Below the pieces are notes generated by a model, which was not told the DNA's origin, did not search any database, and was given only the letters and a program-made list of their open reading frames with translations. Below, in pieces: positions 1-57,715 of a stretch of DNA of 64,000 nt (the first letter of the stretch is position 1; the number at the start of each line of letters is the position of its first letter). The DNA lies in sequence record NC_070956.1; one strand, given 5' to 3'. The position numbers and the translations under genes are program-made.

Positions 1-2
1 CT

Positions 3-2468: not shown

Positions 2469-2473
2469 ACCAC

Positions 2474-2500
2474 GGGGAGGGAGACCTCCCCCATTTATTT
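2474..2500 (+). terminator. Rho-independent terminator
   Basis: GGGGAGG-GAGA-CCTCCCC followed by ATTTATTT just after the stop at 2468. Confidence 0.75.
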
Positions 2501-2516
2501 ACATGAGAGAGTCTTT

Positions 2517-35981: not shown

Positions 35982-36440
35982 ATGAAAAAGATTGTTATTG
36001 CTAGCGCTTTTGTATTTGGTTCATTTGCAGTTCAAGCCGCTGACGTAGCCGTGTTGGGTGGTGGAATGTCCTATCACTTCAAACATGAAGGTCAGAACCA
36101 GGTACATCCCAGCACCGGGGTACAGATCGATAACTTCTCCGTTCTGTACACCACCAAGAACTCCATTGAACTCCCGTCCCTCCAGGTAGCTTATGGGGAC
36201 AACTTCTTTGAATCCAAAGTTGTTGACTTCGGATATCGGGTTGGCCTTGCCACTGGGTATCGTAAGGGGCACAAGTACAGTAACGGTGAATACTACTACG
36301 ATGGGCACGAAATCGGAAACACTGGACTCCTCCCTCTGGTGACCATCACCACCACCATCCACACTCCAATCCCCAAACTTGACTTGGTCGCTGATACAGC
36401 ACCTAACGTAGTAATGTTTGGTTTTAAATACAACCTGTAA
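35982..36440 (+). CDS. Small outer-membrane beta-barrel, PagP-like
   Basis: Signal peptide ending AVQA; SYHF..N.VHP..G; KNS; GLATGY; alternating beta pattern and C-terminal FGFKYNL. Confidence 0.6.
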   Translation: MKKIVIASAFVFGSFAVQAADVAVLGGGMSYHFKHEGQNQVHPSTGVQIDNFSVLYTTKNSIELPSLQVAYGDNFFESKVVDFGYRVGLATGYRKGHKYSNGEYYYDGHEIGNTGLLPLVTITTTIHTPIPKLDLVADTAPNVVMFGFKYNL

Positions 36441-37951: not shown

Positions 37952-37984
37952 AACTCCCTATCACCCACCGGGTGATAGGGAGTT
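37952..37984. terminator. Bidirectional terminator
   Basis: AACTCCCTATCACCC-ACC-GGGTGATAGGGAGTT. Confidence 0.85.
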
Positions 37985-37992
37985 TACTTTAT

Positions 37993-39336
37993 CTACTTTT
38001 TCTTTTTCGTCATTGGAATGACAACAGGTCTTTTATATCTGTCATCATCACGGTAAATTTGGAGATACATCAACTCGTCGTCACCTTCTGGTTCAGCGTA
38101 CACTTTGAAGGGATAGAAAGTCAAGTTATCTTTGTTTTGTGTGGGATTCGTGTAGTATCCATTTATCGTTGCATTCAGATAAGATTTTCCCAACCCGGTA
38201 GAAACGTCGGTGTAAGGAATAGCGGGAATTCGAATGCTAGGAATGGGTTCTGGATGTCCAAACTCCATCATGGAGTAATCCATAAAGAATTCATATTCTA
38301 TTGGTGTTCTGGGGATAACGAACCTGCTGTAATCAACCTGAAGGACTGGCTTGTTCAATCCAATTGAATACGTCACATATTTATTATCACTCCTCCTCGG
38401 AACTGAAATTGTAACACGACCCCAGGCGATGTACTGGTGATCATGTTTTGTTTTGGCCGTTACATGGAGGGAATCACCGGTGTAGTAGTTCTTCGGCACT
38501 ATATTGATATCGTAGAGATCGATATCGCTTTTTACTATCATGGTGTCCGGAGAAAATACAGCGTCCTCTGAAGGAATGTAGAATGAAAGATCGTAACAGC
38601 TTTCTTTAACGTTCTCTTTCACAACCACGCCATTTATCAAGCGGGATTGGAAGGGATATGTGTTGTGCCCCACACCGCCTTGATCAGTCAGCGGGTTAAC
38701 TACCCTGATTTCGTAGGTTTTATCCAGCATGACTGATTTAAAGGTCACCACTCTTTTACTTGGATCTTGACTATCATCCAAGGAAGGAGTTATCTGGTCT
38801 TCAAACCACACGTTGCGATTAAAGAACTCGATTAACTCTAAATCAACTACTTTTTGTTCGTTTCCTCCCAGCATCGACGGGATGTGAATGAAGTAGTAAG
38901 TCCAATTCCCTTCACCTCCGATTCGGATTAGTTTTGGTGGAGTTCCAACGGAGATCCAATAGCTACTCTGGTTGGCCGTTTGGAAGTCATCCCAATCACC
39001 GTAACTCTTACACGGAATAACCGACCTATCGACCAACTGGTCCATTGTATAAATCGGGCATTCGATCACACAGTCGGGATAGACATATCCAGTTTTACGG
39101 TTCATGTGTGTAAGCCGGATATGGCTATCGTCAATCCGTATGGGACGTTCGAGATAAAAGTCGTTTTCAAATCCAGGTTGATAATAACGATCCAGACGAC
39201 TTAACTCCGCGTTGTCGTTTTCAGACATTGCTGTTGCTCGTCGTTTAACCACGCTCTTGATTATGGCGTCCATTACGACGCAACTTCTTGGGTGGATCCC
39301 AAGGTTAATACCTTCGGTGCGATGATCAGCCATCAC
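37993..39336 (-). CDS. Putative virion protein, shortest member of the shared-N-terminal-domain family
   Basis: SVVKRR...RYYQ..ENDFYLE...RKTGY...D.VIE aligns by eye with the N-termini of the genes at 42581-57579; AAGGA RBS (GTG 39336 / ATG 39333). Confidence 0.6.
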   Translation of the reverse strand: MMADHRTEGINLGIHPRSCVVMDAIIKSVVKRRATAMSENDNAELSRLDRYYQPGFENDFYLERPIRIDDSHIRLTHMNRKTGYVYPDCVIECPIYTMDQLVDRSVIPCKSYGDWDDFQTANQSSYWISVGTPPKLIRIGGEGNWTYYFIHIPSMLGGNEQKVVDLELIEFFNRNVWFEDQITPSLDDSQDPSKRVVTFKSVMLDKTYEIRVVNPLTDQGGVGHNTYPFQSRLINGVVVKENVKESCYDLSFYIPSEDAVFSPDTMIVKSDIDLYDINIVPKNYYTGDSLHVTAKTKHDHQYIAWGRVTISVPRRSDNKYVTYSIGLNKPVLQVDYSRFVIPRTPIEYEFFMDYSMMEFGHPEPIPSIRIPAIPYTDVSTGLGKSYLNATINGYYTNPTQNKDNLTFYPFKVYAEPEGDDELMYLQIYRDDDRYKRPVVIPMTKKKK

Positions 39337-39368
39337 TTATTCCTTTCTCAAATACAATTGCCCGAAAT

Positions 39369-39381
39369 TAGGCATAGGATT
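39369..39381 (-). promoter_or_regulatory. Putative late promoter (TATG-type)
   Basis: Minus strand AATCCTATGCCTA, TATG ~37 nt upstream of the start. Confidence 0.4.
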
Positions 39382-39409
39382 CATTGTGAAAAATTAATCT
39401 GGAAATGAG

Positions 39410-39434
39410 TTCAGACATATATAATTACAGTGTA
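39410..39434 (+). promoter_or_regulatory. Putative phage early promoter (copy 6, variant)
   Basis: TTCAGACATATATAATTACAGTGTA, same TTCAGA-to-TGT spacing as the other copies. Confidence 0.55.
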
Positions 39435-39546
39435 AATACATGTAGTATTTATAATTAACTTTATTCGTTATGTTTTGCCTGGAAGTTTAATCAGGTATCG
39501 CTGTCTAGAACAGTCTAGACGGGAACAATCAAAGAGGAAATACTCT

Positions 39547-42513: not shown

Positions 42514-42528
42514 TTTAATAAAGTGATA

Positions 42529-42562
42529 AACTCCTACCTCCCTTAACGGGGAGGTAGGAGTT
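42529..42562. terminator. Bidirectional terminator
   Basis: AACTCCTACCTCCC-TTAACG-GGGAGGTAGGAGTT between convergent genes. Confidence 0.85.
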
Positions 42563-42580
42563 CTTTATATCACTTTTTTG

Positions 42581-45500
42581 TTACTTGACCATTTTGATCG
42601 GAACAGTTACACGCCAATCCTTGGTTCTGAGAGCTGTTTCTTGATCAGTGAATGTGAACGACACGTCTCCTGTACCAGCCTCACCTGTGGATGTGACTGT
42701 CATGGTTGTGTACCCGGAAGGATCCGGTTCACCAGTGATCTGTCCGACACTCTGGAAGAATCGATCATTCTTGACGACATCCTTAGTGATGTTACCCTTC
42801 ATAACCTTGAACTGACCACCCCACCTGTCTTGTCTCAGTACAAACTTAACTGTCGATGTCGCGTTATTAACCGCAGTGCCTTCAGTCACACTAAGAACAT
42901 CAACAGGTTGTTCCGGACAAACGTAAGTTCCCTCACATCTGACATTGAATTGCCGCTTAGCAATGGTCACCACCAATTCAGGCCAGAACTCGCCACCGAG
43001 ATGACTAGTGCTGACAGAGAGGTAGTACACACCAGGGTCTAATGCTGGATCGTGGATGAGCATGTTGGAATAACCGTGGAGTACAGGTAATCCAGGATCT
43101 TTGTTCTTCATACTCAATGTGAAGAAGGTTGCACCTTGGAGAGGTTCCCCGTCCACTTCAATGCGACACTTGATCCGCTGCATCTTGATCGGAACGATAC
43201 CTTCACTGTCAGGATAAAGTACCAGATCTGTGATAGGAGGTCGAGCCATAGCAATGTTTCCGACAACACTGTGGGTGGTTACTTTACCATCTGGCGCGGT
43301 ATAAGTTGCGTGGATAGTAAACGGTATATCATCAGTACTGAAGTACGCATCCCTATTGGTAAAGAACAAGAGACCATTTGCATCAGTCCCTCGACTTTCC
43401 ATGGCGGTTTGGTTAACAACTCCTTCCCAAGACTTGTCAAACGTAACTTCGATTTGGACTTTGGGGTCATCGATAGCAACAGGCTTATCGTCGTAAGAAA
43501 GTGACATGGGCATACTTTCTACTTCGAACGGTTGCCAGTTCAACAGCGCTTGGTGATTGATAAGAATATTCTCATCGGCTTTCACTGTTGAGTTTATCGT
43601 TACCTTGGCGACCTGGGCTTCTGTAGGCGTTGCAATATCGTTTCTTGTAAACGCCACTACGTTCTTGTGGGATCCAGGCGAGATCATCTTCCAAGGAAGG
43701 TCAAGACTCTTCCCAGTCACCTTTTCAGGAATACCAATCTGTAAACCACCGGTGGTTGTGGTGAAGGCAGGAACTGTTTTGTGGTTATCCGTGAAACGAG
43801 TTTCATCATTCCACAATGCAAATGACACCACACCCTTATCGTCACGTTTACCGTCAAGAGAGAACTGATTAGGTATCGCCAGGAAGTCAGGGCCGTCGTA
43901 CGGTTTGAGAGTGAACTTCTTGGTATACGAGAAACGACGCCAGCCGTTATCAACACCAATAGCCATGTCAAACTTTACATCTACTACCTTTTCCTCGGTT
44001 ACTTTCTTGATGTAGAGCCACGCCGTTTTATCCCAAGTATAAGGATCGATATGTTTCACAACTTCTCTACCAGGCGTGGTAACAAAGTCGATCAATACAT
44101 CTCTGGTACGTTCTTCACCGTTCACCAGTACCTTAACTGGGAGTCCACCGCCATCATACCGATTCGCTACGATATTCTCACCCGATAAAGGAACAACCGA
44201 GATAACGGAATCTTTGACGATGTTGGGATAGACGTAAAGCTGGTCCCACCAAATCGTTCCCAAGGGAGAGATATAATGACTCTTGAATCCAACTGTGTCG
44301 GTTACCATCACCCCGGGTTGACCGGAGTCCCTGATGACTTCGTAATACAACCGATTGGGTTCTGCACGAGTTAACTGGATGAGCTTCTTGGGCCCCAATT
44401 CTTCCCCTACCGGGAAATCCATATCTTCAGTGGGAATGTTCTTTCCACCAATTGCAGCGATATAGTTGGTGTAAAGTGTCTCTCCTTTCTTACCCGTCAA
44501 ACCGTTAGGATCCAACTTAACTTGGGTGAGTCTTCCGTAACCAGGAATAGCCTTGGTGATCTCCAAATCAATGAAACACTTGGCGGTGTGTACTTCGGTA
44601 AGAACTGTATGTCGGAACGTACCTATCAGCAGGTCCAGCAACACACCATCTGTGACGGCATTGGTGATCGGTCCTGCATAGAGTACGCCACCTTTATACT
44701 CACCTTTAGAACGGACACTTATTCCGTGAAGCATGGAAGTCATGAATTCAGGGACTGTGGCAAGTTTGATAGGAGCGCCTTTAAACTTCGCCTTGACCAC
44801 GATGCCCAGCTCGGCACCAGTCGGTGCGTTAATAAGCAACGGATATCCGTAAAGTGTTAAGTCGGAAGGGGTGTCTTTCTGGATTTTTACGGTCATCTTT
44901 GCGGTGGTGTCATAGTCGAAGCCACCAGAGCTATGGATCATGTTCACCTGGATTTCTTCAATGAAATCTTCAGTAGTTGATCCACGGAATGCCTTGATCA
45001 CCATTTCCAGTTTGTTATCAGTGCGCTCGATGATCAATCGGTTAGACGGACTAAATGTCATGTCTACAAGAGTGGTAACGTCCACGTCACCAATGGTGAG
45101 TTTGAGGTTATGTCGGACCTCTTGTCCACGCTGGATGTTGACGTTCTTGGGGATGTTGTGTTGTATGTCATTTAGACCCAACTCTTCCCGGATTAGCTCA
45201 CTTACGTAGATGATGACATTCTCGCTCCCGATCGCTTCGTCTGTTACCTTTACAGTTCCAGAAGTAAACGTGTTGGGATCGATGTCAGTGGCGTTCTTTC
45301 TCGATAACTCCATCGATTTAAAGAAGATATCTCCAAAGAGATCATTAATCGCTTGGAGATCATTCAGTTGGCGATTGGGTAAACACACCCCGATTGAATT
45401 GCGCCAGGCCAAGAACAGCACTTTACCCTGGACGGTACCGCGTTTAAAACCTTCAATGAAATCTTCGAAGGTCATAACCACTTCTACCGCGACACCAAAG

Positions 45501-45790
45501 TCCGTGAGAACGTCTCTGAGCGATACTTGTTCCAGCTCCAGGTCAACCCTCGCAAAGTTACGAGAACGTCGTGTAAGGCACACACGTTTGACATTATCAG
45601 GTCCTGTATGGACTCGTTCAATGATAAAGTCTTCCGCTTTCATTCCACTGTAACGAACATCGGCAAGTTGACGATCAACTATGTCACCCTGTTCTGTTAC
45701 GAGTTCATGTCGTTTCCGGAGGAAACGTTTAACAGGTGAATACAATGGGTCTTTTACCCATCGTGGAAACACCTTGCTTTCTTCTGCCAT
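42581..45790 (-). CDS. Large beta-rich putative virion protein (~1069 aa), shared N-terminal domain family
   Basis: Start refined to MAEESK after AAGGGG; WVKDPLYSPVKRFLRKR...RYSGMKAEDFIIE...SRNFARVDLELE. Confidence 0.65.
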   Translation of the reverse strand: MAEESKVFPRWVKDPLYSPVKRFLRKRHELVTEQGDIVDRQLADVRYSGMKAEDFIIERVHTGPDNVKRVCLTRRSRNFARVDLELEQVSLRDVLTDFGVAVEVVMTFEDFIEGFKRGTVQGKVLFLAWRNSIGVCLPNRQLNDLQAINDLFGDIFFKSMELSRKNATDIDPNTFTSGTVKVTDEAIGSENVIIYVSELIREELGLNDIQHNIPKNVNIQRGQEVRHNLKLTIGDVDVTTLVDMTFSPSNRLIIERTDNKLEMVIKAFRGSTTEDFIEEIQVNMIHSSGGFDYDTTAKMTVKIQKDTPSDLTLYGYPLLINAPTGAELGIVVKAKFKGAPIKLATVPEFMTSMLHGISVRSKGEYKGGVLYAGPITNAVTDGVLLDLLIGTFRHTVLTEVHTAKCFIDLEITKAIPGYGRLTQVKLDPNGLTGKKGETLYTNYIAAIGGKNIPTEDMDFPVGEELGPKKLIQLTRAEPNRLYYEVIRDSGQPGVMVTDTVGFKSHYISPLGTIWWDQLYVYPNIVKDSVISVVPLSGENIVANRYDGGGLPVKVLVNGEERTRDVLIDFVTTPGREVVKHIDPYTWDKTAWLYIKKVTEEKVVDVKFDMAIGVDNGWRRFSYTKKFTLKPYDGPDFLAIPNQFSLDGKRDDKGVVSFALWNDETRFTDNHKTVPAFTTTTGGLQIGIPEKVTGKSLDLPWKMISPGSHKNVVAFTRNDIATPTEAQVAKVTINSTVKADENILINHQALLNWQPFEVESMPMSLSYDDKPVAIDDPKVQIEVTFDKSWEGVVNQTAMESRGTDANGLLFFTNRDAYFSTDDIPFTIHATYTAPDGKVTTHSVVGNIAMARPPITDLVLYPDSEGIVPIKMQRIKCRIEVDGEPLQGATFFTLSMKNKDPGLPVLHGYSNMLIHDPALDPGVYYLSVSTSHLGGEFWPELVVTIAKRQFNVRCEGTYVCPEQPVDVLSVTEGTAVNNATSTVKFVLRQDRWGGQFKVMKGNITKDVVKNDRFFQSVGQITGEPDPSGYTTMTVTSTGEAGTGDVSFTFTDQETALRTKDWRVTVPIKMVK

Positions 45791-45811
45791 AACTATACCC
45801 CTTATTGTCGT

Positions 45812-45820
45812 CATAGCATT
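45812..45820 (-). promoter_or_regulatory. Putative late promoter (TATG-type)
   Basis: Minus strand AATGCTATG with upstream T-rich tract. Confidence 0.4.
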
Positions 45821-45838
45821 TGAGAATAAACAAAATAA

Positions 45839-45868
45839 AGAGAACCCTACCGAAAGGTAGGGTTCTCT
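45839..45868 (-). terminator. Rho-independent terminator
   Basis: AGAGAACCCTACC-GAAA-GGTAGGGTTCTCT; T-run on the minus strand. Confidence 0.8.
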
Positions 45869-45881
45869 AATGACTTATTGT

Positions 45882-48800
45882 TTACTTGTTATGGATACCA
45901 CCACCGAACGCACGGTTATCCAGTGCACGGTTCACAACAGCATCCAAGGTTTCGTTGTTCGGGTACTTGTAAGTACCAGTCAACTGGAAGTCCGAAGGTG
46001 TCGCATTCGGACCCGCACCAGGGAATGTCGCTGTCAAGATACCGGTTGCAGGATCGTAAGTTTCGTTGGCTACGCCAGCACCATCGGTACGACCTGGGGT
46101 GTACACGCGAGTAACTGTCGGGCCCAACTTAACAGACGGACTGAACGAACCATCGGCTTCTTTACACATCATGGAGAAGTTGACATTACCACCACCCCAA
46201 GAGATGTCATACAACTCAACGTTACGCGCACCCTTCACAGGGATTGACGTTGCTGAGAAGCTGATAGTGAACGGAACGTACACTTCTGCGTTCTCCGCAT
46301 TACCGTCTACCTTGATCCAGCCATTACCGTTGTAGTTGGTACCGGCGGCGTCAGGAGCTGCAACAGCGTAGGTTGTTACATACGCACTCTCATTGTTCAG
46401 GTGTTCACAAACGTAACGATTAGTGCCAGGAATGAGACCTGTCATGTTACCGAATACGTAAGTGGCTTGTCTCGGCATGACCGAGTTAGCACCCGGAACC
46501 AGGTTGTGAGACATTTTCAGGTTGTTACCAATCCAGGTGTAACCTGTGGTGTTTGCGCTGTAGTACCAAGCGCGACGAGAACCAGAAATCTGGGTCTTGG
46601 CCGCTGCTTCGGTTGCCACCATTGCAGTACAACCAACGAGCATGCTCAGGTCAACAGGAATCGGTTCGATGTCGAACTGAACTGTGAGAACACCAGTTGC
46701 TGGGTCATAAGCACTGCTCTTCACATCCAGGGAACCACCCTTAGAACCTTGTGCTGAATCCAGTTTGGTCACGGTAGCTTCAGTCGGAAGATCGTTAGTG
46801 TTATTCTTCAGCGTGTACTTCATTGTGGCCACGTCATCCTTAACGGAAACAGAATCCAGCGTTGAGACGTACGGTCCTTTAGGGAGGACATTGGTGTAAT
46901 CCAGAACCCAAGGAAGTCTTACCTCCAAGTTATCCGGTTGTTTGAGAGCCAGGTAACCATTACCAGTGTAATGGGTGTCCTGTGTTGTGCTCGGAGCAGC
47001 TACGTTGTAGTCGATGATCCAAGATACTTCACCCTTGTTGTGGATGGTACCAACCGCACCTGTTGTCGCAGACGGATTAACTGCCAGTGCCACGAACGCA
47101 CCGTCACCTTGGAAGTTGTAACCGCCGTTAAGCGTCACATAGTAGTTGCGCTGCAAGCGACCATTCTTCCATTCGATGCCAAGGTCACGCATATCGAAGA
47201 CGTTCTGTACGAAGTCGACTTTATACTTAGCGATCTGGCCATCATTGGTAGTGATCTCCATATCTGCTTCGAACTTATCGGCCCAAGAACCAGTGAGGAT
47301 CTTGGTCTTCGCAGACCAACTCAGAACACCAGTCGCAGGGTCGTAGGACTGGGTGAGTTGGTTAGAAACGTTATCGAGGAAACCTTTGACCGGAGTGAAC
47401 TTGGTGATACGGGCACTTGTCGGAATCGTTCCGGTCAGATCCATTTTCAGGTTCTGAGAGAACAAATCAACTTGGTGGTACTGACTAACAGGACCGGCGG
47501 AAGGAACGATCGGTTCGCTATAGTCTACAGTGAACGGAATGATCACCTTAACCTTGTTGCCTTTATCGACGGAGTAGTTACCGGTACCCGTTGTCTTGTA
47601 CGGACGAATGTCAGTACGACGCGGGAGATTCAGTTTCCACACCTTGTCACCAGTAGTGTGTTCCAGCAAGCGAGCGGTACCAGCATTGTTGGTGTATTCG
47701 ACACCACTCAGAACCAAGTTGTCGATAGCCACAGTACCTGCGGTCACTTCATGATCCAGGACCAGAGCGTTAGCACCCAGCGTTGCGTTCACACTCTTAA
47801 CGAGATGTTCCACATGCTGGTAGGTCACGTGAGGTTTGAAGGTACTACCGTCTTCGTTACCAGAGTCAATGGTACCCTCGAGGATAACTTCAACTGGTGT
47901 TGCACCGCTAGGAGCGTCACAGTCATAAGTCACCACAAAGAGACCAGTTGTCTTGTCATAGACAGGAGGTTTGGTCGAAGAGATGGTCGCGCCAGTTGCC
48001 ACAGGTTCACCGACAAACTTAACATCAGGCGGGAATGCACCGTCGTTATTGGCAAACTTGTAGGTCTCTACCAGTTCATTGTTAGTGATAACAGTACTGA
48101 CCTTGGTAGGAGTGTAAATAACCGGAGCGGGAGGTACCACAGCCTTGGTAACTTCCATCTTACTATCCAACGCCGGTTTGGTGATGTTATCGCCATAAGC
48201 CGGGAAGTTCACACGACTGTTGAAGGTCGCCTGACCACCGTTCTTAGCGAACGCATCAGTCATCTCGAACACAAATGTCAAGATACCAGTTACTGGATCG
48301 TAGCTTTCACTCTTAGGTGTCTTGGTTCCGTTCAGGGTATTCAGAACGTAGTCGAACGGCTTATTGGTATAAGCTGTGCCTTTCGGAACACCGCCTTGGG
48401 CAAAAGCGTTGTTAACTGTCACTGTCAACAGGTTGCCTTCCAACTCCATGTCTTTCAGCCAGGTGTTAACGTAACCGTTGTTAGTCAAGAACTGCTTGAA
48501 GGTACAAGTCCACGGGAGTGCGTAGAACAACTTACCACCTGCGTTGGCCATGAACTTACCGCTGACCTTGTAGACAGTAACGTCATCAGTCTTCGGAGGA
48601 GTTGTCGGGACATAGCACAGATAGAAGATGTTCGGGGTAGCACTACCGGTCTTCTCGGTACGGATGGGTCCGGTTGATTCAGGATCAGCCGAAGTCACCA
48701 CGTGGTAGCCTTCAGTGATGTCTACATCACCGGCATTACGTTTCACCTTGTGGGTAACACGGAACGCCTTTTCGTAGTCCTGCCATCCAGCGTTGGTCTG

Positions 48801-51800
48801 GGTGACACTATGGACATACAGGGTGTGAGTGAGAGGAGCGGTCAGCTCTTTGACACCAGCCTTGAACACCGGATTGATCACAACAGGGAGTGCGGCCGTA
48901 CCGGTCGGTTTGGTAATCCCAACCTTGAAGCTGAAACGACCAGTTTGGTCATCATAAACTTCTTCAGTTGCTACACCGTCGATGTTGGAAGGAGAAGAGA
49001 ACGCCTTAACCATCATCTCTGTCGGAATGCTGCCGTCACCATTGGTGATGTCATAGACAATCGCCATAGTTGCGTCGTCAACAGTACTGGAGACGTGAGT
49101 AGCGATCAGAATCCGATCCGGGTTAACAATAGCCTCGAACAGCGTGTCCTTACCAATACCACCGTCGTCGGCCCAGATATCGGTTACGAACTTGATCTTC
49201 TCGCCATCCAGCAACGGGTTCATCTCGAATACAAACGAACCTTCACCAGTTGCAGGATCGTACTTGTACAGCTCACCGTCGACACTCAACGGTGTGCGGT
49301 TCCCGCCAACAGTTTTCTCGGCTGAACTGAACGGTGTTTTCAGGCGGAGATTGAACGGATAGGTATCACCTTCCGGAGTGACCTTGAAGGAGACGGTCAA
49401 CTGGTTAGTATCCACGTCATACTTCCCACCAAGGGTGGTGGTGGTAAAGGTCTTCGGTTTAGGCAAGATGTAACTGCCGCGAGTCACAGTCGGTGTGATG
49501 AACCCACACAGGGACTTCAGCTTGATAGTCCCGATAGCCGAAACGGAGGTTTGTGCAGTCGCATTACCGTAATAGTGAACCACCACAGTAATTACACCAG
49601 TTGCAGGATCGTAGCTTTGGGCCTGGATTTTCCCGTTATCGGCAGTGTTGGACCCACTAATGGCTCCTGTAAAATATCCATCCAACGGGATCTTGCCGTC
49701 TTTGGTCCTGACATCAACCAACCAACTCACCGCCATGACCGGTCGAGTTCCAACAGGGACATTTACTTGTTTGTACTCGGGGTCGTTCCGGAATATAGCT
49801 GTGCCTTCATTCACATCTGAGAGCACGTGGTAATCAGAACGAGAAGCTGTTACCGTCATATTCTCGAACGGGTAATTGAATTCCAGAGTCCAATCCCAGC
49901 GGTTTCTCGGGTCCTCGTGCATCGGAACAGCGACGGTACCGACCCAGACGTTACGATCTTCACCTTCTGTGGCTTTACGTTTCCAGACAAGCTCAGCTTC
50001 GAAGCCAGGATGGTTCCCGCCATTACTAATCTTGAAGTTGGTCAGCTTGGCGGCCACATCTACAGAACTAACGCCCTTGGTATCGCGGAACGAATACTCA
50101 AACTTGAGTTCTTGGTTGCAATAGGACTTGTTCAGCAGATAGATGGTCAACGGCTCCACCGTCTCGGTCACACGGAACGGGACTTCGGTATCTTCAACCA
50201 GTACGATCCCCTCGTAGTCGTACCGTACCGGAACAGTGGTCACTTCCTTAGCTGTTACGCTATAAGTGATGGTCATGGTCCCGGCATTGTAATTCTGGGA
50301 AACCGGGTTAACCCCTTCCAGACCAGTCCCACCATTGATGGGTTGAACCACAACAGTTGTCGGTGCAGGAGAGCCATCGTTAGCCACGACTTTACCGGAG
50401 TGAGTGATCAACTTGGTGGTCATCACCGGCTTTTCCCAGACAATGGAGTACGCGCTCTTAGCTGTCGTTTCCACAGTGTAGGACTCAGAGGCGTTCGGGT
50501 ATTCGTCGGCGTAGACACGACCTTCAACCAGGTAGTTGGTACCCTCACCACTCGGATTCTCCAGAGCGATATCAGCGTACACAGTTCCTGTATTGACGTC
50601 GTAACGACGATTGGTCAATTCCTTGGTACCGTTCTTGGTGTTTACCGCACGGGTAACCGGGGTCACCAGTGTAGCACCTTCAGGGATGGTGTCGTCGGAC
50701 AGACGAACTTGCATACTGACAGTACCGACGGTCCCGTTAACAGTCAGTTTGGCTTCAGTCACCTTGATCGGGGTACGGACAACTTTGACGACCACGTCAT
50801 CGATGAACTGAAGTTCCGGCTTACCAACGTACGGAGTCAGAATTACTGACCCAACGAATGCGTACGTCATATCCTTGGAAGGATCGAGTGTCACAGTCGC
50901 TTCGAACTTGGCGAGACCAGTCACGGGATCGTAACTTGTGTCTTCCTTGGTGATCGGAGTCGCAACGTTGGTTGCAGTAGCAAACGGAATCTTGAAGTCA
51001 GCGGCTACTGGGTAGGACCCGTCTGCAAGCCGAACCTTGTAAATGCCGATTGCTTTATCACCGACAACTTCCAGAGACTGGAGAGTGATACTCGGATCGG
51101 TGTTTCCAGTGCCATCATCCGGGAGAGTCCAGGAATCAGGTTTCACTGTACCAGTTGTTTCGGCTACAGCGTAGCTGGTACCAGAAGGAACAGTTGCACT
51201 TACGGTGAGCGCATACTTCTCGATGGTGTCGTTCGGTGCAACGATGTCCGCACTAACTTCCCACAAGCCCTTGCTCTTATCAATCTCCTTGAAGGAGAAC
51301 TTGGGATCAGCAGCGATGTTCTCACCAGAAACATAGGCAAGTGTGGCGTCGCCGGTGTAGGCGGCATCACCAAGGTACAGCCCTACCTTCCTGACGATAC
51401 GGAGACCATTAAGCGTGGTTTCAACATCGGTTGCAGTGAGATCGAGTACCAGGTCCTTGACGGATACGGTGAACAAGGAACCATCTGCTTCGATACGAGC
51501 GTTGTAGGTGATCGGTTCGATCACACCTGTCTTCAACACGAGGTCGAAGTACAAGACACCGGTACCCGGGTGGTAATCCTGGTTAGGTGTTCCCTGATCA
51601 GGTGCGATACCAGAGATGGAACTGGCGTCGTAGAACTTGGCATCACCGGGATGTACGTTGGGGGAGCCGATACGATTGATCCGAACAGTATGACGGATCT
51701 TGTCGCCCATCAGCTTGACACCCAGGTCAGTAGCTTCCCATTCCACCTCGCCGCTATTGGTGTACGTTCCGGTGAAATCACCGAACAGAGGCTTCTTGAA

Positions 51801-54266
51801 GTCGTCTGCTTTGAACTCACCCTTGGCGGAGTAAACGTTATCACCCAGATCGGGGTAAACGATATCCACTGTCAGCGTCCAGAAGTCACCGGCCTTTTCC
51901 AGAGTGTGAGTACCATTGGGTTTGAGGCCGACTGTATTGGTCAGACCCAACAGAGTCAGATCTTTAACCTTGGAACCATCGTCACTGTAGGTTGCGTCCA
52001 AAGTCCAGCGAAGTTTGGGATCGGCGCTGTCCAGGAGGAACTCGGTGTTCGTGGTGGTGAAGTTGATTTCGAGATCGTTATCGAATACAGCTTCGAATTT
52101 GGCGGTTGCTGTTTTCACAGTTCCGTCGCGTTCGTGAGTACCGTGGACAACCCATTCGAAGTCGACAGTCAGTTCTACCGGATCATTTCCATAAGCAGTC
52201 AGTTCTGCGGAAACGGTACCGGATTGGAGATCAACGTCCCAACCAGGCTGGGAGAAACTTTCGGGTACGAGACCCTTAATGTTTTCCATACCTTTAGGGT
52301 CGATAGCCGGAATGTCTTTACCATCAGACAACACGGCGTTATACGGCCACGTTACCTTGGTCGGTGCGCGAGGGGAATCGAACACTCCCTTACCTGGTGT
52401 GATGACGGCACTGACCACAGTCACCCAAGTACCATCACCGTTGGTGGTTCCAAACGGAGTGGACGGGGTGCTACAGACCACGCTGAGTTTTACAGAGATC
52501 TTGATCGGCTCAATGTCCGGATCAGGAATGATAACGATTGTCACGAAACCATTCTCGATAACTGCTGCGTCACGCATTGTCCCACCAACGATGGCCGGGA
52601 ATACGTTTGCGATCATCGGATCGTTCGGGCTTTCAGCGTTGTCTACCTTAACACGATAAGTGACCAACTGGGTCTTTTCATCGTAGGTGAGAGTCTGTTG
52701 GGTGAACGTGAGGACCGGATCACCAGTGGTATCGAACTCCTTGGAGAACTTCATGGAGTAGGGAACCATCTCCTCCAGGTCGTCGATCTTTGCTTCACAG
52801 AAAAGTTCGATCTCGTACTTCTCAGGCGTTTGCGGAATCACGGTTATGTCGTGATAGACCTCACCGTTTTCGGTGACGACACCAGGACCTGCGTTGTCGT
52901 TGTCTTCCAAACCAACAGTCCCCGGAAGGAACTTATCGGAGCGTTGCGTGAAGTAAGGAACAATCCCACCCACATAACGGAAACGACCAACCATGTTCAG
53001 TACTGGACCGAATGTGGGTTCATCATAGACAAACTCGATCTCCGGGCGCACTTCCTTAGGGATGGAAACTTCGGTTTCTGCTTTGCGGAGACCGATATCC
53101 CACTTATGGGTTTGAGCACCCATCGTCTCAGTTTTCAGAGCGAACGTGTAAACATCACCATCGACTGATTTGACTTCTGCTGTTTCAGACTTCAGCTTGT
53201 CGGACAGACCAGTGACATATTCACCAGTATAGGTGTCTTTCACTTTAGCCGTCAAGGTGTACGCATCAACAACTGCCACTTGTTCGATGACCAAGCGATC
53301 CACGTCAACACCACCAGTGAACTCAGCGCCCTTGGTCACTGACTTAGAACCTTCAGTGTCTTTCCGAGTGAAGTCCACTTTAACGGTCAAAGTACCGAGG
53401 AACTGATCGTTGACTTCTTCGTCACCGGTATACGGTTCGAATTCACTGTAAACAGTAGCGACTGTTTTGTGTTCGGTCACAGAGAGTTCGTTGGAAAGTT
53501 CCAGACGGAAACCAGCAGGTACTTTGTAGTCACTAGCGATGCTAACTACCGGTGACATGGTTTCGATACCCTGCCAGTGTGCTACCAGTTCGATATCGAA
53601 CTTGGCTACGACAGCAGTCTTGTTTTCCATGCCAGTTGCACGACTAGGGTTGATCTTGACGACCATACCGTCGCCGCCATCCAGGTTCTCGTCATAAACG
53701 AAAACTGCTACCGGGGTGGGTTCCAGGAGTGACCGATCATTGACCATCATGGTGTAGTCAGCACTGAGTGGATGGGCGTCCTCGGCGGAAACATCCAGGC
53801 GATCAAAGAAGATGTTGGAAGTGGCTTCACGGAGACCACCTTCACCTTTCAGAGTCTTGAGGAAGAGACAATACTGTCCGGTCGGTTCATAAAACACGTA
53901 CTCGAAATCCCAGTTGTTACTGCGGAAGAGTGCGTGAAGTTCACCGATAGTTTTAACGGTTTTGACGTTAGTCTCCATACCAGTCAGGATTTCACCGAAG
54001 GGCAAACGCTCTACAGGGATATCCACCCGACCGAAACCGGTGATTCGTGAAGTGATACAAACCAAAGACTCACGATCCCCCTGGATGGGTTCGATACGCA
54101 CATCTTCGGCTTTAAGGTTATTGTAGCGCTCTCTCGCTACTTCGAGTTCGCCCTTGGGATCATCGATTTCTAGATCAGCAAGGCGCTTTGCGAGGAACCG
54201 TTGTACAGAGACCCAGAATGGATCACGTACAAAGGCACTCCTTTCAACAATCAACCCGTTTTCCAT
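45882..54266 (-). CDS. Giant (2794 aa) beta-sandwich-repeat putative virion fibre, shared N-terminal domain family
   Basis: FVRDPFWVSVQRFLAKR...RYNNLKAEDVRIE...ITGFGRVDIPVE; at least 12 YDPxTG-type motifs; T/V/G-rich; GGAG RBS. Confidence 0.7.
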   Translation of the reverse strand: MENGLIVERSAFVRDPFWVSVQRFLAKRLADLEIDDPKGELEVARERYNNLKAEDVRIEPIQGDRESLVCITSRITGFGRVDIPVERLPFGEILTGMETNVKTVKTIGELHALFRSNNWDFEYVFYEPTGQYCLFLKTLKGEGGLREATSNIFFDRLDVSAEDAHPLSADYTMMVNDRSLLEPTPVAVFVYDENLDGGDGMVVKINPSRATGMENKTAVVAKFDIELVAHWQGIETMSPVVSIASDYKVPAGFRLELSNELSVTEHKTVATVYSEFEPYTGDEEVNDQFLGTLTVKVDFTRKDTEGSKSVTKGAEFTGGVDVDRLVIEQVAVVDAYTLTAKVKDTYTGEYVTGLSDKLKSETAEVKSVDGDVYTFALKTETMGAQTHKWDIGLRKAETEVSIPKEVRPEIEFVYDEPTFGPVLNMVGRFRYVGGIVPYFTQRSDKFLPGTVGLEDNDNAGPGVVTENGEVYHDITVIPQTPEKYEIELFCEAKIDDLEEMVPYSMKFSKEFDTTGDPVLTFTQQTLTYDEKTQLVTYRVKVDNAESPNDPMIANVFPAIVGGTMRDAAVIENGFVTIVIIPDPDIEPIKISVKLSVVCSTPSTPFGTTNGDGTWVTVVSAVITPGKGVFDSPRAPTKVTWPYNAVLSDGKDIPAIDPKGMENIKGLVPESFSQPGWDVDLQSGTVSAELTAYGNDPVELTVDFEWVVHGTHERDGTVKTATAKFEAVFDNDLEINFTTTNTEFLLDSADPKLRWTLDATYSDDGSKVKDLTLLGLTNTVGLKPNGTHTLEKAGDFWTLTVDIVYPDLGDNVYSAKGEFKADDFKKPLFGDFTGTYTNSGEVEWEATDLGVKLMGDKIRHTVRINRIGSPNVHPGDAKFYDASSISGIAPDQGTPNQDYHPGTGVLYFDLVLKTGVIEPITYNARIEADGSLFTVSVKDLVLDLTATDVETTLNGLRIVRKVGLYLGDAAYTGDATLAYVSGENIAADPKFSFKEIDKSKGLWEVSADIVAPNDTIEKYALTVSATVPSGTSYAVAETTGTVKPDSWTLPDDGTGNTDPSITLQSLEVVGDKAIGIYKVRLADGSYPVAADFKIPFATATNVATPITKEDTSYDPVTGLAKFEATVTLDPSKDMTYAFVGSVILTPYVGKPELQFIDDVVVKVVRTPIKVTEAKLTVNGTVGTVSMQVRLSDDTIPEGATLVTPVTRAVNTKNGTKELTNRRYDVNTGTVYADIALENPSGEGTNYLVEGRVYADEYPNASESYTVETTAKSAYSIVWEKPVMTTKLITHSGKVVANDGSPAPTTVVVQPINGGTGLEGVNPVSQNYNAGTMTITYSVTAKEVTTVPVRYDYEGIVLVEDTEVPFRVTETVEPLTIYLLNKSYCNQELKFEYSFRDTKGVSSVDVAAKLTNFKISNGGNHPGFEAELVWKRKATEGEDRNVWVGTVAVPMHEDPRNRWDWTLEFNYPFENMTVTASRSDYHVLSDVNEGTAIFRNDPEYKQVNVPVGTRPVMAVSWLVDVRTKDGKIPLDGYFTGAISGSNTADNGKIQAQSYDPATGVITVVVHYYGNATAQTSVSAIGTIKLKSLCGFITPTVTRGSYILPKPKTFTTTTLGGKYDVDTNQLTVSFKVTPEGDTYPFNLRLKTPFSSAEKTVGGNRTPLSVDGELYKYDPATGEGSFVFEMNPLLDGEKIKFVTDIWADDGGIGKDTLFEAIVNPDRILIATHVSSTVDDATMAIVYDITNGDGSIPTEMMVKAFSSPSNIDGVATEEVYDDQTGRFSFKVGITKPTGTAALPVVINPVFKAGVKELTAPLTHTLYVHSVTQTNAGWQDYEKAFRVTHKVKRNAGDVDITEGYHVVTSADPESTGPIRTEKTGSATPNIFYLCYVPTTPPKTDDVTVYKVSGKFMANAGGKLFYALPWTCTFKQFLTNNGYVNTWLKDMELEGNLLTVTVNNAFAQGGVPKGTAYTNKPFDYVLNTLNGTKTPKSESYDPVTGILTFVFEMTDAFAKNGGQATFNSRVNFPAYGDNITKPALDSKMEVTKAVVPPAPVIYTPTKVSTVITNNELVETYKFANNDGAFPPDVKFVGEPVATGATISSTKPPVYDKTTGLFVVTYDCDAPSGATPVEVILEGTIDSGNEDGSTFKPHVTYQHVEHLVKSVNATLGANALVLDHEVTAGTVAIDNLVLSGVEYTNNAGTARLLEHTTGDKVWKLNLPRRTDIRPYKTTGTGNYSVDKGNKVKVIIPFTVDYSEPIVPSAGPVSQYHQVDLFSQNLKMDLTGTIPTSARITKFTPVKGFLDNVSNQLTQSYDPATGVLSWSAKTKILTGSWADKFEADMEITTNDGQIAKYKVDFVQNVFDMRDLGIEWKNGRLQRNYYVTLNGGYNFQGDGAFVALAVNPSATTGAVGTIHNKGEVSWIIDYNVAAPSTTQDTHYTGNGYLALKQPDNLEVRLPWVLDYTNVLPKGPYVSTLDSVSVKDDVATMKYTLKNNTNDLPTEATVTKLDSAQGSKGGSLDVKSSAYDPATGVLTVQFDIEPIPVDLSMLVGCTAMVATEAAAKTQISGSRRAWYYSANTTGYTWIGNNLKMSHNLVPGANSVMPRQATYVFGNMTGLIPGTNRYVCEHLNNESAYVTTYAVAAPDAAGTNYNGNGWIKVDGNAENAEVYVPFTISFSATSIPVKGARNVELYDISWGGGNVNFSMMCKEADGSFSPSVKLGPTVTRVYTPGRTDGAGVANETYDPATGILTATFPGAGPNATPSDFQLTGTYKYPNNETLDAVVNRALDNRAFGGGIHNK

Positions 54267-54292
54267 TTATTGGCTCCAGGATATGTGGGTTA

Positions 54293-54319
54293 TAAAGAAG
54301 GGGTGAACGAATCCACCCC
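54293..54319 (-). terminator. Rho-independent terminator
   Basis: Minus strand GGGGTGGA-TTCG-TTCACCCC-TTCTTT. Confidence 0.75.
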
Positions 54320-54357
54320 ATACTACATTAGTTCGCAGATAACTGTGACTGGTGTCT

Positions 54358-57300
54358 TTAAGTAGTCAGTGTGATCGTTGCTACGAAGGTGGGTTTAACT
54401 TCACCCTCCCAAGTACCTGCACGGAACTTGGCACGAACGGTAACCTTCTCACCTGGGGAGACACGACCAGGATTGGTGAAATAAACACCTTCTTGATCGA
54501 ACCGAACACGTTGGCTGTTGGGTTCACCATTAACACTGTAACTGATCACCTCGATCAAGTTAGCAGCTGTGTTTTCCACGCTCTCACCTGTCTCCTTGTT
54601 ACGGTACACGACTTTCCAGGGCTGGAAGTATTCATTATCCCAATCACCTGGGACCAGTTCGTGTTCCCAACCTGGGAGCAAGGGTGGTTTGTGACTGAAC
54701 ACATGATCAGGCTGAATGTACCAAGAAGCGATATTCGCGAATTTGACAGTCAACGCCGGGAGCGGTTTCTCGACCGGTGTAATGGTGTCGAACAGAGGGT
54801 GTTTAAACACGATATTGTCACCGTCCATGCTACCGTATTCGCCATCAATGGTTGACGTGATAATCGCAGCATCGCGTACCAGATACTTGTTCATACCAGC
54901 ACAGCGTAGATTGAGTACGTATTCTTTCTTCTCTTGGTCGATCGTCAATTCCGAACTCGGATTCTTCCCGTATGGAGGAAGTGAAGGAGTTCTGAGAACG
55001 TTCCCTACAAAAGGTTCAGGCATGTACGGAGACATGAATGTCAACGTGGTCATACTCTTCTGGAGGATCTTGTCAAAGAAATCTTCGTACTTGATCTTGG
55101 TCTTGAGAAGGGTAAGATGACTACCACGTTCGACAGTTACATCAACCACTCCTACCGACGGGAGTACGACTTTCAACTTCTTGGAAAGGGGTGATACGAT
55201 ATCACTGGAGAGGATAACAAGGATTCCGGTCCCATCTTCTTCATTCCTGTAAATGAAGATTTGAGGAATGGTATCCGATCCACCGCCCGGGAGATAGCGA
55301 TACATCCAGTCATTTTGGATGCTCACACTCTTATCCCCGATCTTGAATCTATACTTGGTCAGCGTTACCGCGGACGGTTGTTCTTCATCAATGGTGTTAC
55401 AGTACAAAGGGATAACGGAATCAGATTCCACTTCACCAATTGGAAGGTCATCCTTGATGAGAGTGGTGTTATCGAGCACAGGAATTACATCTTCCAGAAT
55501 GACAGGAACGCCCTGATCTTTCAGATACGGATCAGTGATCTTTAACGTACTGTATTCCCCGTAGACACCACTTTTGTAGTCGATCCCTACTTCCGGGTAA
55601 ACCTTTTCGGGAACGAGAACCACAGTCACCACGTTGAAATGTTGCAGACCATCTTTGATGATCCCCACGGGAAGTGTCATCGTAATCTTGGTACCAGAAA
55701 CATAGTTCTTATCCAGAACCACAACCTTGGTCATCTGTTCGGGTTTTCCTTCCTCATCAGCGAATGGGGAATCGACAAAACCGGTCTTGGTGACTTGAAC
55801 AAGACTCTTGTTGTAATACCCTTCTTTCAAGAACCAATCACGAATATAGAACTCGTTAGGCTTGTCGGGATGAACCAGCGCCTTCAATTCGAGGGTACTT
55901 CCTTCGCCGAGGTCGAGATCGGTTCGACATTCGATCACGGAAAGCTGATGGTAGAGATCCATAGTCCATACGGTCTCGTGTTCACCATTCTTGAATACCG
56001 CTTCCAATTCAAACCACTCACCCGGGTGAGGAGCGATAAAGCGCTCAGTGCTACCATAAGAACGGATCAAGGGAGTAGAGATAATCCGGTGATATTCGTT
56101 GTTGGTAACATCGGAAATGTATTCGGGTGGGTTAACCCAGGGTTCATTGGGATTGGGAACCGCGAAGACATTCAGGTTTTGGAAGGCAGGATGATTAACA
56201 TTCTGATCGACCACCAACTGAAGTTTTGCGGAGAACAATGGTTCCATGTCAGTTGCTGGCATTTGCGCAAAATCAAAAGAAAGATCTTTCATTCGCGCAC
56301 CAGCGACAAACGGGTGCACCATCTCGCGCTGGCCGAACATCATACTGAGTTCAGCATCATCACATCCAATGACCCGACACTCGACATGGTACAGACCCAG
56401 CTTCTCCACATAGGTCATTTGAGCAACGTCAGTGAACGGACCTTTAAGGATCCAGCTATCTGGGAGTGCTGTAACATTTTCAGCATCATCTTTCAGAGAG
56501 AACAGGAATCCCTGGGGAAGTGTAACCCGACCGACATCTTTGAAGTAGAAAGAACCGGCTTTGGTCGCGATGAACGCTTTGTTCCGGAAACGCAACGGAT
56601 CCAGAACGACCTCAAAGATAAACGTGGAATTGGAACTTGCCTTCTTATCACCTTTCATGTTGGAGAGCTCGGCTTCGAACACCAACAAGGAGGACTCCAG
56701 TGTTTTCATCTGGGAAGGAAGCGTAAACTCCAGCTCGGCTGTGTATTCGGTATCACTGATTTTAGTCAGCTTGCCGGTAAAGTCCTGGGTAAAAGGAGCA
56801 TGTCCTGCCCAAGACAAATTCTTACCCAGGAGAGTGGTCGCGTCAAACCCAAGTTTCTTACTCAGGGACAGATTGACAACTGTCTTCCCGTCGCGTTCGT
56901 TGAACTGGACACTCTTGGGGAACTTAACCTGGAGTTGATTCTCGCTTTCCTCATCCAGTTTGTCGCCAGACAGGAGAACAATCTCGCCTTGCCCTTCGAT
57001 GGAGAGATCTTCGATGATCACACGTTGCGGATCCACTGCTGGATCGATGGAAGTGGGGAAATGGAACCCACTCATCTTCTCGAAGATGATGTCGGTAACA
57101 ACCGGGAAGTTGTATATGTCATTACCCAGGAGTGCTTTGCGGGCGAAGTAGTAGAACTTGTTTGTTTCTACCACGTAGAAGTAATCTCCCTTTCCTGTAT
57201 GGAAAGGTGCCATAGCGATCATGTCGCTAATAGTAGCGCATTCATAGAGTCCTGTGAAAGTTTTGGTGTGCGGGACCAAATCCATGAACAACTCTTTGAA

Positions 57301-57579
57301 GGGAAGCGGATGAACCTCTACGTCAAAACGTGCGTATCCGTTAGTACGGTAAGCAATGGTACTGTACGTCACACCGTCTTTTATAACGGGCGGTTCGACA
57401 CTGTTATTAACGGGGGTCGGGTTCAGATAACGTTTGCGCAATTCCGCTATCTGTTCTTCCGTCGGGTTTTTGAGTTCGGCGATACGCTCTTCACACACCT
57501 TAGCCAGCGCAATTTTAACTGCTGGCCAAGAAGGGCTGAGGATCGACCGATCACGGTTAATCGTGAAATCGACTGACAT
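54358..57579 (-). CDS. Large beta-rich putative virion protein (~1073 aa), shared N-terminal domain family
   Basis: Start refined to MSVDF after GGAG; SPSWPAVKIALAK...RKRYLN...RTNGYARFDVEV. Confidence 0.65.
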   Translation of the reverse strand: MSVDFTINRDRSILSPSWPAVKIALAKVCEERIAELKNPTEEQIAELRKRYLNPTPVNNSVEPPVIKDGVTYSTIAYRTNGYARFDVEVHPLPFKELFMDLVPHTKTFTGLYECATISDMIAMAPFHTGKGDYFYVVETNKFYYFARKALLGNDIYNFPVVTDIIFEKMSGFHFPTSIDPAVDPQRVIIEDLSIEGQGEIVLLSGDKLDEESENQLQVKFPKSVQFNERDGKTVVNLSLSKKLGFDATTLLGKNLSWAGHAPFTQDFTGKLTKISDTEYTAELEFTLPSQMKTLESSLLVFEAELSNMKGDKKASSNSTFIFEVVLDPLRFRNKAFIATKAGSFYFKDVGRVTLPQGFLFSLKDDAENVTALPDSWILKGPFTDVAQMTYVEKLGLYHVECRVIGCDDAELSMMFGQREMVHPFVAGARMKDLSFDFAQMPATDMEPLFSAKLQLVVDQNVNHPAFQNLNVFAVPNPNEPWVNPPEYISDVTNNEYHRIISTPLIRSYGSTERFIAPHPGEWFELEAVFKNGEHETVWTMDLYHQLSVIECRTDLDLGEGSTLELKALVHPDKPNEFYIRDWFLKEGYYNKSLVQVTKTGFVDSPFADEEGKPEQMTKVVVLDKNYVSGTKITMTLPVGIIKDGLQHFNVVTVVLVPEKVYPEVGIDYKSGVYGEYSTLKITDPYLKDQGVPVILEDVIPVLDNTTLIKDDLPIGEVESDSVIPLYCNTIDEEQPSAVTLTKYRFKIGDKSVSIQNDWMYRYLPGGGSDTIPQIFIYRNEEDGTGILVILSSDIVSPLSKKLKVVLPSVGVVDVTVERGSHLTLLKTKIKYEDFFDKILQKSMTTLTFMSPYMPEPFVGNVLRTPSLPPYGKNPSSELTIDQEKKEYVLNLRCAGMNKYLVRDAAIITSTIDGEYGSMDGDNIVFKHPLFDTITPVEKPLPALTVKFANIASWYIQPDHVFSHKPPLLPGWEHELVPGDWDNEYFQPWKVVYRNKETGESVENTAANLIEVISYSVNGEPNSQRVRFDQEGVYFTNPGRVSPGEKVTVRAKFRAGTWEGEVKPTFVATITLTT

Positions 57580-57614
57580 GGGTTTCTCCATTTGGTTTGT
57601 TATTACTTATTACC

Positions 57615-57627
57615 TAGGCATAGCATT
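57615..57627 (-). promoter_or_regulatory. Putative late promoter (TATG-type)
   Basis: Minus strand AATGCTATGCCTA, TATG ~40 nt upstream of the start. Confidence 0.4.
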
Positions 57628-57650
57628 CGGAAATAAATAAAGAACATAAA

Positions 57651-57680
57651 AGACACTCCCAGCCTAAGCCAGGAGTGTCT
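57651..57680 (-). terminator. Terminator-like hairpin
   Basis: AGACACTCC-CAGCCTAAGCCA-GGAGTGTCT with T-runs on both strands. Confidence 0.65.
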
Positions 57681-57715
57681 TTATTTAAGTTTACAAATGA
57701 GCAATGACGTACAAG

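Follow-up and report, generated by a model that had tools for sequence, protein, structure and literature searches.

Paralogous proteins with a common N-terminal domain and unrelated bodies in the phiKZ-like Aeromonas phage LAh10, candidate components of virion appendages

The 64,000-nucleotide stretch of sequence record NC_070956.1 considered here as a whole (hereafter, the window) belongs to the genome of Aeromonas phage LAh10, being 100% identical to record MK838116.1 (260,310 bp, genus Ludhianavirus), and a position in the window corresponds to the position in that record minus 62,000. LAh10 is a phiKZ-like jumbo phage, in which internal head proteins of the family PF12699, DUF7941 proteins and genes for gp131-like fibres are present. 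Its genome encodes a family of five proteins, from 204 to 2794 residues in length, which have one N-terminal domain of about 165-200 residues in common (hereafter, the N-domain) and differ beyond it. Four of these proteins are encoded on the minus strand of the window and the fifth lies past its end. The four open reading frames (ORFs) had been pointed out, at the same coordinates, in a preliminary description made from the letters of the window alone, and the lengths of about 1069 and 1073 amino acids (aa) proposed there for two of them agree with the starts indicated by the ribosome-binding sites (RBSs), i.e., M9 and M5. The positions of the Shine-Dalgarno sequences favour M9 in LAh10_86 (45790), M5 in LAh10_88 (57579), and M2 in LAh10_84. 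The genes and domains of the family are the following, in window coordinates except for the last line:

37993..39336, minus strand: LAh10_84 (P0001), 447 aa, divergent member (ORF and N-domain profile)
38977..39261, minus strand: partial N-domain of LAh10_84, aa 26-120, profile positions 20-113 (profile match)
42581..45790, minus strand: LAh10_86 (P0002), 1069 aa from M9 (ORF 42581-45814 of 1077 aa, and RBS)
45170..45790, minus strand: N-domain of LAh10_86, profile positions 1-197 (BLASTP and profile)
45882..54266, minus strand: LAh10_87 (P0003), giant member, 2794 aa (ORF)
53667..54266, minus strand: N-domain of LAh10_87, aa 1-200 (BLASTP, profile and AlphaFold2 model)
54358..57591, minus strand: LAh10_88 (P0004), ORF of 1077 aa with the likely start M5 at 57579, i.e., 1073 aa (profile, E 1.6e-37)
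56980..57579, minus strand: N-domain of LAh10_88, about aa 5-205 (BLASTP and profile)
54742..55644, minus strand: hypervariable distal region of LAh10_88, aa ~650-950 (comparison with phages D3 and D6)
MK838116.1 131221-131835, plus strand: LAh10_105, stand-alone member of 204 aa, about 5 kb past the end of the window (profile match)

It had been claimed that the four window proteins share a start of about 170 residues, most weakly so in the 447-residue member, before diverging into unrelated regions. Pairwise, BLASTP aligns the N-termini of LAh10_86 and LAh10_87 at 28% identity over 160 aa (E 3e-14), those of LAh10_87 and LAh10_88 with an E-value of 3e-7, and those of LAh10_86 and LAh10_88 with an E-value of 1e-3, while the N-terminus of LAh10_84 gives no significant pairwise BLASTP match with the other members (E 1.6). 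LAh10_84 is added to the family by profile comparison: a 24-row profile of the N-domain (A4) finds it with an E-value of 2.3e-5 when the whole phage genome is searched, the N-domain profile scores it at E 5e-6 among the 291 ORFs of the window, and a profile devoid of any window sequence, i.e., built only from the stand-alone members of other phages, still retrieves it at E 9e-5, the next ORF being at E 0.4. It also matches an intermediate member of the family (P0023) at E 2.8e-5. The match is confined to the first half of the domain (profile positions 20-113), so the earlier remark about its weakness holds. The same profiles recover LAh10_105 as the fifth member. Past the N-domain, no cross-match below E 0.4 is found by BLASTP between the bodies of the four window proteins. 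As judged from these sequence comparisons, the window proteins are genuine paralogues that have one N-terminal domain in common and continue into unrelated bodies.

The family extends well beyond LAh10. Among 1.84 billion representative proteins, a profile of the three clear N-termini recovered 70 clusters at E<=1e-3, with a match that begins no later than residue 14 in nearly all of them and with protein lengths from 138 to 5283 aa, namely (i) about 21 clusters of stand-alone proteins of 138-226 aa, (ii) about 27 clusters of 355-1095 aa, and (iii) about 23 clusters of 1.3-5.3 thousand residues. Such a profile search had been advised at the outset; the homology withstands it, and the domain is nearly always N-terminal. 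Proteins of the LAh10_86 type account for about 12 metagenomic clusters (1052-1069 aa), and the nearest relatives of the N-domain family are found in OBP, N1M2, Kc263, AH04, pEt-SU, and other jumbo phages. Word-based protein searches with the N-domain or with the bodies of LAh10_88 and LAh10_87 returned close relatives only, and a scan of IMG/VR with the N-domain gave no match. In the four window proteins, neither Pfam nor PHROGs matched any domain, and sequence searches of the PDB with the N-domain and with all four proteins had no match.

Structure prediction, also advised beforehand, yields a confidently folded N-domain. As the prediction from a single sequence was unusable (predicted local distance difference test, pLDDT, of 36), an alignment of 33 rows was used instead, from which residues 1-175 of LAh10_87 were modelled with AlphaFold2, giving a confident alpha/beta model of residues 1-160 (pLDDT 83, predicted template modelling score 0.77). 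When this model was compared with the PDB, Foldseek found nothing below E 0.04 and the best result of an exhaustive VIA search had a Z-score of 3.5. In the BFVD, only family members match it well, the weak chimallivirus matches being to proteins of RisingSun (583 aa), OBP (220 aa), and USC-1. With respect to the PDB, searched by sequence and by predicted structure, the N-domain would therefore represent an orphan alpha/beta fold lacking a solved counterpart. Four polar or aromatic positions are near-invariant, namely Y48, E59, R74, and D82, and the stand-alone form of the domain, which is the best-conserved member, is kept in all genera checked.

The bodies of the family proteins are acidic and rich in Thr, Val, Gly, and Asp, that of the giant LAh10_87 having an isoelectric point of 4.8. 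Between aa 1038 and 2770 of LAh10_87 (45957..51155, minus strand) lie at least 10 copies of a unit of about 100 aa with the signature YDPxTG, with which a second unit of about 105 aa alternates in the C-terminal half. These repeats were detected with a motif-anchored hidden Markov model under a leave-one-out control, where each copy scored 22-43 bits against the profile built from the other nine, compared with at most 15 bits for shuffled sequences; BLASTP self-comparison of the four window proteins had found no repeats in any of them. The YDPxTG unit of about 100 aa is also present in 5-13 copies in six other large members. LAh10_87 thus has the tandem modules of about 100 aa by which adhesins with Ig-like or beta-sandwich repeats are recognised, and its units may be beta-sandwiches. 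On this question of repeat adhesins, the ESM Atlas provided weak leads only (Big_2, BACON, and invasin, at 0.76-0.79) and no usable match; its model of the 447-residue protein was of poor quality. In the member sequences inspected, without a signal-peptide predictor, no N-terminal hydrophobic stretch was seen.

The sister phages D3 and D6, whose background genes are 97-99% identical to those of LAh10, allow the members to be compared one by one. The giant LAh10_87 is 99% identical in D6 and 98% in D3, LAh10_86 is 96% identical in both, whereas LAh10_88 is only 61-64% identical overall. Within the latter, the N-domain retains 82-92% identity, aa 650-950 fall to 20-46%, and over the final stretch of about 77 aa, covered by two 50-aa windows, identity recovers from 76-80% to 100%. 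A conserved N-terminus combined with a variable distal part among close relatives is therefore seen in LAh10_88 but neither in LAh10_86 (96%) nor in LAh10_87 (98-99%). The N-terminal truncation of the LAh10_88 orthologue of D6 proved to be an artefact, the start annotated in RefSeq being about 100 codons too late: in the DNA of D6, the complete N-domain is encoded in frame (aa 1-259 are 87.6% identical to those of LAh10), and the promoter motif is likewise conserved. As for LAh10_84, only C-terminal remnants of 64 aa (D6) and 88 aa (D3) are left, while D3 possesses an extra family member of 678 aa adjoining nrdB; these gains and losses of members fall at the edges of the cluster. The family is expanded and in flux within Ludhianavirus. 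The preliminary description saw in it an arsenal of interchangeable fibres, which fits the conserved N-terminus and hypervariable distal part of LAh10_88 but is overstated for LAh10_87 and LAh10_86, as conserved as housekeeping genes.

Beyond the genus, LAh10, OBP, N1M2, and one metagenomic contig have the genes in a common order, beginning with the stand-alone copy and continuing with nrdB, a mid-size member, and the giant. The stand-alone copy lies alone on its strand, surrounded by a block of small genes in the vicinity of thymidylate synthase; in LAh10, it is LAh10_105, which holds little beyond the family domain and is the sole gene on its strand inside the small-gene block, and its counterparts elsewhere are OBP_226 in OBP, gp179 in N1M2, and one protein on the metagenomic contig. 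Three members can be detected in OBP and three in N1M2, the other large genes of these clusters not being detectable as members. In the nrdB region itself, nrdB consists of two coding sequences in D3, a homing endonuclease is annotated in D9, and an HNH endonuclease immediately follows nrdB in N1M2.

The claims that each of the four genes has its own downstream terminator and that three of them have the same TATG-type upstream motif are both borne out by the transcription signals of the cluster, which are the following:

37952..37984, no strand assigned: 15-bp bidirectional terminator after LAh10_84
39371..39381, minus strand: motif AATCCTATGCC, 39 nt before the ATG of LAh10_84
42529..42562, no strand assigned: 15-bp bidirectional terminator common to LAh10_86 and a convergent YadA-like gene
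45810..45820, minus strand: motif AATGCTATGAC at LAh10_86, which contains the first ATG of the ORF; the real start lies 21 nt downstream
45839..45868, minus strand: 13-bp hairpin terminator after LAh10_87
54300..54319, minus strand: terminator after LAh10_88, with an 8-bp hairpin and a T-run, and a TATG directly 5' of the terminator
57617..57627, minus strand: extended motif AATGCTATGCC resembling a late promoter, preceded by a T-rich tract and located 39 nt ahead of the M5 start of LAh10_88
57649..57682, minus strand: 15-bp hairpin terminator ending the nrdB unit, upstream of LAh10_88

A strong hairpin followed by a T-run stands behind all four window genes, in support of individual transcription units. 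There are exactly three copies of the octamer ATSCTATG in the 64-kb window, all on the minus strand and 21-39 nt before the start of a family member. When one mismatch is allowed, an extended form of the motif, AAT(G/C)CTATG(C/A)C, is found at five sites across 124.6 kb of the genome; at four of them, it comes after a terminator and T-rich tract and immediately precedes a gene, namely LAh10_88, LAh10_86, LAh10_84, or LAh10_22. The last of these (MK838116.1 25183-26286) encodes a PF12699 internal head protein, and the terminator, the T-tract, and the motif AATGCTATG are arranged there as in the family members. TATG is also present behind terminators upstream of other genes of the head module, and the giant LAh10_87 has only a looser TATG beside the preceding terminator. 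In phiKZ, the core of the late promoters is TATG, with the G as the transcription start (PMC4666361). Since the extended motif matches this late core and also precedes a head-protein gene, the family genes are likely transcribed late. A different motif, of the TCAGATAGATATTATC type, is found at MK838116.1 75160-75190, 88080-88110, and 95320-95350 (about 13170, 26090, and 33330 in the window), where it precedes LAh10_54, LAh10_66, and LAh10_79, with variants at LAh10_82 and LAh10_102; it looks like the early promoter, i.e., that of the virion RNA polymerase, of this phage group.

Modular proteins of comparable layout have already been described in phiKZ-like phages. In phiKZ, a common N-terminal segment of gp131, gp133, gp134, and gp135 forms the hetero-hexameric base of the fibres under gp130 (PMC13250141). 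This set resembles the LAh10 family: both occur in the same phage family, and in both, neighbouring paralogues start with one N-terminal module and differ in their C-terminal parts. The LAh10 N-termini are nonetheless not of the gp131 type, as the hhalign probability is 0.2% (profile A2 versus the gp131-like profile A3) or 0.06% (A4 versus A3), and the N-domain profiles A2 and A4 have no match in phiKZ. The gp131-like profile instead picks out LAh10_48-51 (E 1e-24 to 2e-5), and the N-domain family is separate, as had been proposed, from the fibre family located at 1-9.5 kb:

window 1-9452 and MK838116.1 56223-71452: LAh10_48-51, the gp131-like tail-fibre paralogues of LAh10

Within the gp131-like set, a leucine-rich repeat protein of 2311 aa retains just positions 194-243 of the 251 in the profiled N-terminal segment, i.e., its C-terminal end, where the conserved NPH is located. 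Unlike the gp131-like family, the N-domain family comprises a stand-alone copy as well as giants of up to 5.3 thousand residues.

The second system is that of DUF7941 (PF25613), to which the filament proteins gp22 and gp23 of phage Goslar belong, and where varied payloads occur beside small paralogues without payload (bioRxiv 10.64898/2026.04.21.720040). With its N-terminal module, varied payloads, small payload-less paralogues, and restriction to phiKZ-like phages, it parallels the LAh10 family. Membership of DUF7941, for which the PF25613 threshold is 27 bits, was rejected: there was no PF25613 match at E<=0.1 in LAh10_84, LAh10_86, LAh10_87, or LAh10_88, nor at E<=1 in LAh10_105, and hhalign gave a probability of 0.06% for the N-domain (A4) against DUF7941 (A6). 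LAh10 does have DUF7941 genes, but at other loci (28.4 and 52.3 kb of the record). In multi-tailspike and branched receptor-binding systems, such as TSP1-4 of CBA120 or those of the RaK2/phiKp24 type, a conserved N-terminal anchor carries variable distal parts. The likeness to the LAh10 family resides in this combination, although only LAh10_88 varies in such a way, and the LAh10 family differs in having no match to a beta-helix, a depolymerase, a T4 gp10-like anchor, or a tailspike in the searches of Pfam, PHROGs, and BFVD. By tblastn with the LAh10 family, no homologue of the Vibrio phage pTD1 type was found. The design principle is already known, then, while the N-domain family, its orphan fold, its stand-alone member, and its giants of 2-5 thousand residues are undescribed in the libraries and papers searched.

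The explanation we favour, and to which we give about an even chance, is that the family consists of clade-specific, late, accessory virion proteins, i.e., surface appendages or adhesin-like filaments of phiKZ-like phages of the OBP/Ludhianavirus type. It is put forward because a strictly N-terminal domain is borne by bodies of very different size, because there is a giant made of repeat modules as well as a hypervariable distal cassette in LAh10_88, because members are gained and lost between sister phages and have promoters of the late type, and because the same design is documented twice in phiKZ-like phages, namely in the gp131-like fibres and in DUF7941. Under this explanation, the N-domain would be an assembly module by which the paralogues, together with the stand-alone copy of 204 aa, attach to each other or to the same site on the virion. 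The giant, a bead-string of repeats of about 100 aa conserved between sister phages, would serve as a structural thread, the hypervariable distal region of LAh10_88 would be the part in contact with the host, and the 447-residue member as well as the extra 678-aa member of D3 would come and go between sister phages. The conservation of the stand-alone copy suggests that N-domains would bind each other, as the base, cap, or filler of a hetero-oligomer, and so points to co-assembly more than to each fibre docking singly on one socket. What we infer here is that the proteins are made late, reside in the virion, bind by way of the N-domain, and serve in adhesion; the homology, the N-terminal placement, the range of the family, the confidence of the fold, the lack of known relatives, the layout of the transcription units, the sharing of the motif, and the pattern of variation come directly from the data. 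Going further, the stand-alone N-domain, the giant thread, and the shorter exchangeable proteins may together build one hetero-oligomeric appendage, whether on tail, neck, or head, and as such a third, as yet undescribed, modular assembly system of phiKZ-like phages, distinct from the gp131-type fibres and the DUF7941 filaments, but this extension seems to us rather doubtful.

Several observations weigh against appendages. No virion proteomics for any member was found in the literature, where the proteome paper of OBP was not covered, and the papers on N1M2, ZPAH34, and Kc263 contain no mass spectrometry. In the OBP record, the homologues are called 'hypothetical', whereas many other proteins are named 'putative virion structural protein'. 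No tail fibres were seen in the micrographs of N1M2 (N1M2 paper). The family cluster stands about 30 kb away from the tail and baseplate module, beside nrdB and blocks of small genes, and neither the giant nor LAh10_86 displays variation of the kind expected from host range. Lastly, Pfam had no match in 13 further members, so that none of the 17 members in total gives a match to a lectin, hydrolase, or Ig family or has a recognisable fibre or spike domain.

Some of these points would also agree with proteins that are late but absent from the virion, either intracellular or released on lysis, e.g., assembly scaffolds, factors binding virion bouquets or debris, or decoys, with the N-domain as an intracellular module for oligomerisation or regulation. 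The members have neither a structural annotation nor a proteomic record, the stand-alone copy is alone on the opposite strand among small genes and genes of nucleotide metabolism, and the cluster adjoins nrdB and a YadA-like gene of the outer-membrane type instead of tail genes, all of which agrees with such a role. Proteins of 1-5 thousand residues made of repeat modules with a hypervariable distal part are, however, what one typically finds in exposed adhesins and fibres, an internal head protein gene has the same form of promoter, and structural genes are scattered in phiKZ-like genomes, so that a role outside the virion appears unlikely. The near-invariance of Y48, E59, R74, and D82, together with the occurrence of the stand-alone form in all genera checked as the best-conserved member, could also mean that the N-domain is itself functional, i.e., a ligand-binding or catalytic domain that would act by itself in the 204-aa protein and be held at the end of a spacer in the long ones. 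We regard this as decidedly improbable, considering that no likeness to an enzyme or binding fold emerges from the Foldseek search of the PDB or from VIA, that conserved charged residues could equally make an interface, and that a strict N-terminal placement on differing bodies is the usual signature of the attachment modules of phage fibres (PMC13250141).

The promoter shared with the gene of a PF12699 internal head protein has yet another possible meaning, namely that the proteins are packaged in the head and ejected, the N-domain acting in capsid targeting or processing, and the heads of phiKZ-like phages do contain many large packaged proteins (Goslar preprint, bioRxiv 10.64898/2026.04.21.720040). 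On the other hand, similarity to PF12699 or to any other head protein was found neither by Pfam nor by PHROGs in the four window proteins, and long arrays of repeats with a hypervariable distal segment are ill-suited to proteins that are ejected, which makes packaging in the head very improbable indeed.

Two neighbouring genes on the plus strand deserve a mention. LAh10_85 (39547-42513) lies inside the family cluster, in convergent orientation to LAh10_86; it contains a genuine YadA_anchor domain (PF03895, aa 931-988, E 2.7e-14) and also matches PHROGs of the 'tail/adhesin' type. Its head part varies, aa 350-450 going down to 18-22% identity with both D3 and D6 and aa 1-100 to 18-28% with D3 only, and its C-terminal half is 94-100% identical. 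The orthologue of LAh10_81 (35982-36440) in D3 and D6 is called a PagP-like lipid A acylation protein in RefSeq; Pfam gives no match to LAh10_81 at E<=0.01.

The atlases of phiKZ and Goslar obtained by cryo-electron microscopy left much of the flexible periphery of the virion unassigned, and the LAh10 family offers testable candidates for it in the OBP/Ludhianavirus branch, the candidates being the giant, the stand-alone domain, and several variable members, among which LAh10_88 contains a clear hypervariable cassette. It would add an orphan fold to the short list of attachment modules of jumbo phages. For Aeromonas phages under consideration for aquaculture, LAh10_88 and the neighbouring YadA-like gene are obvious places where differences in host range between LAh10, D3, and D6 may reside.

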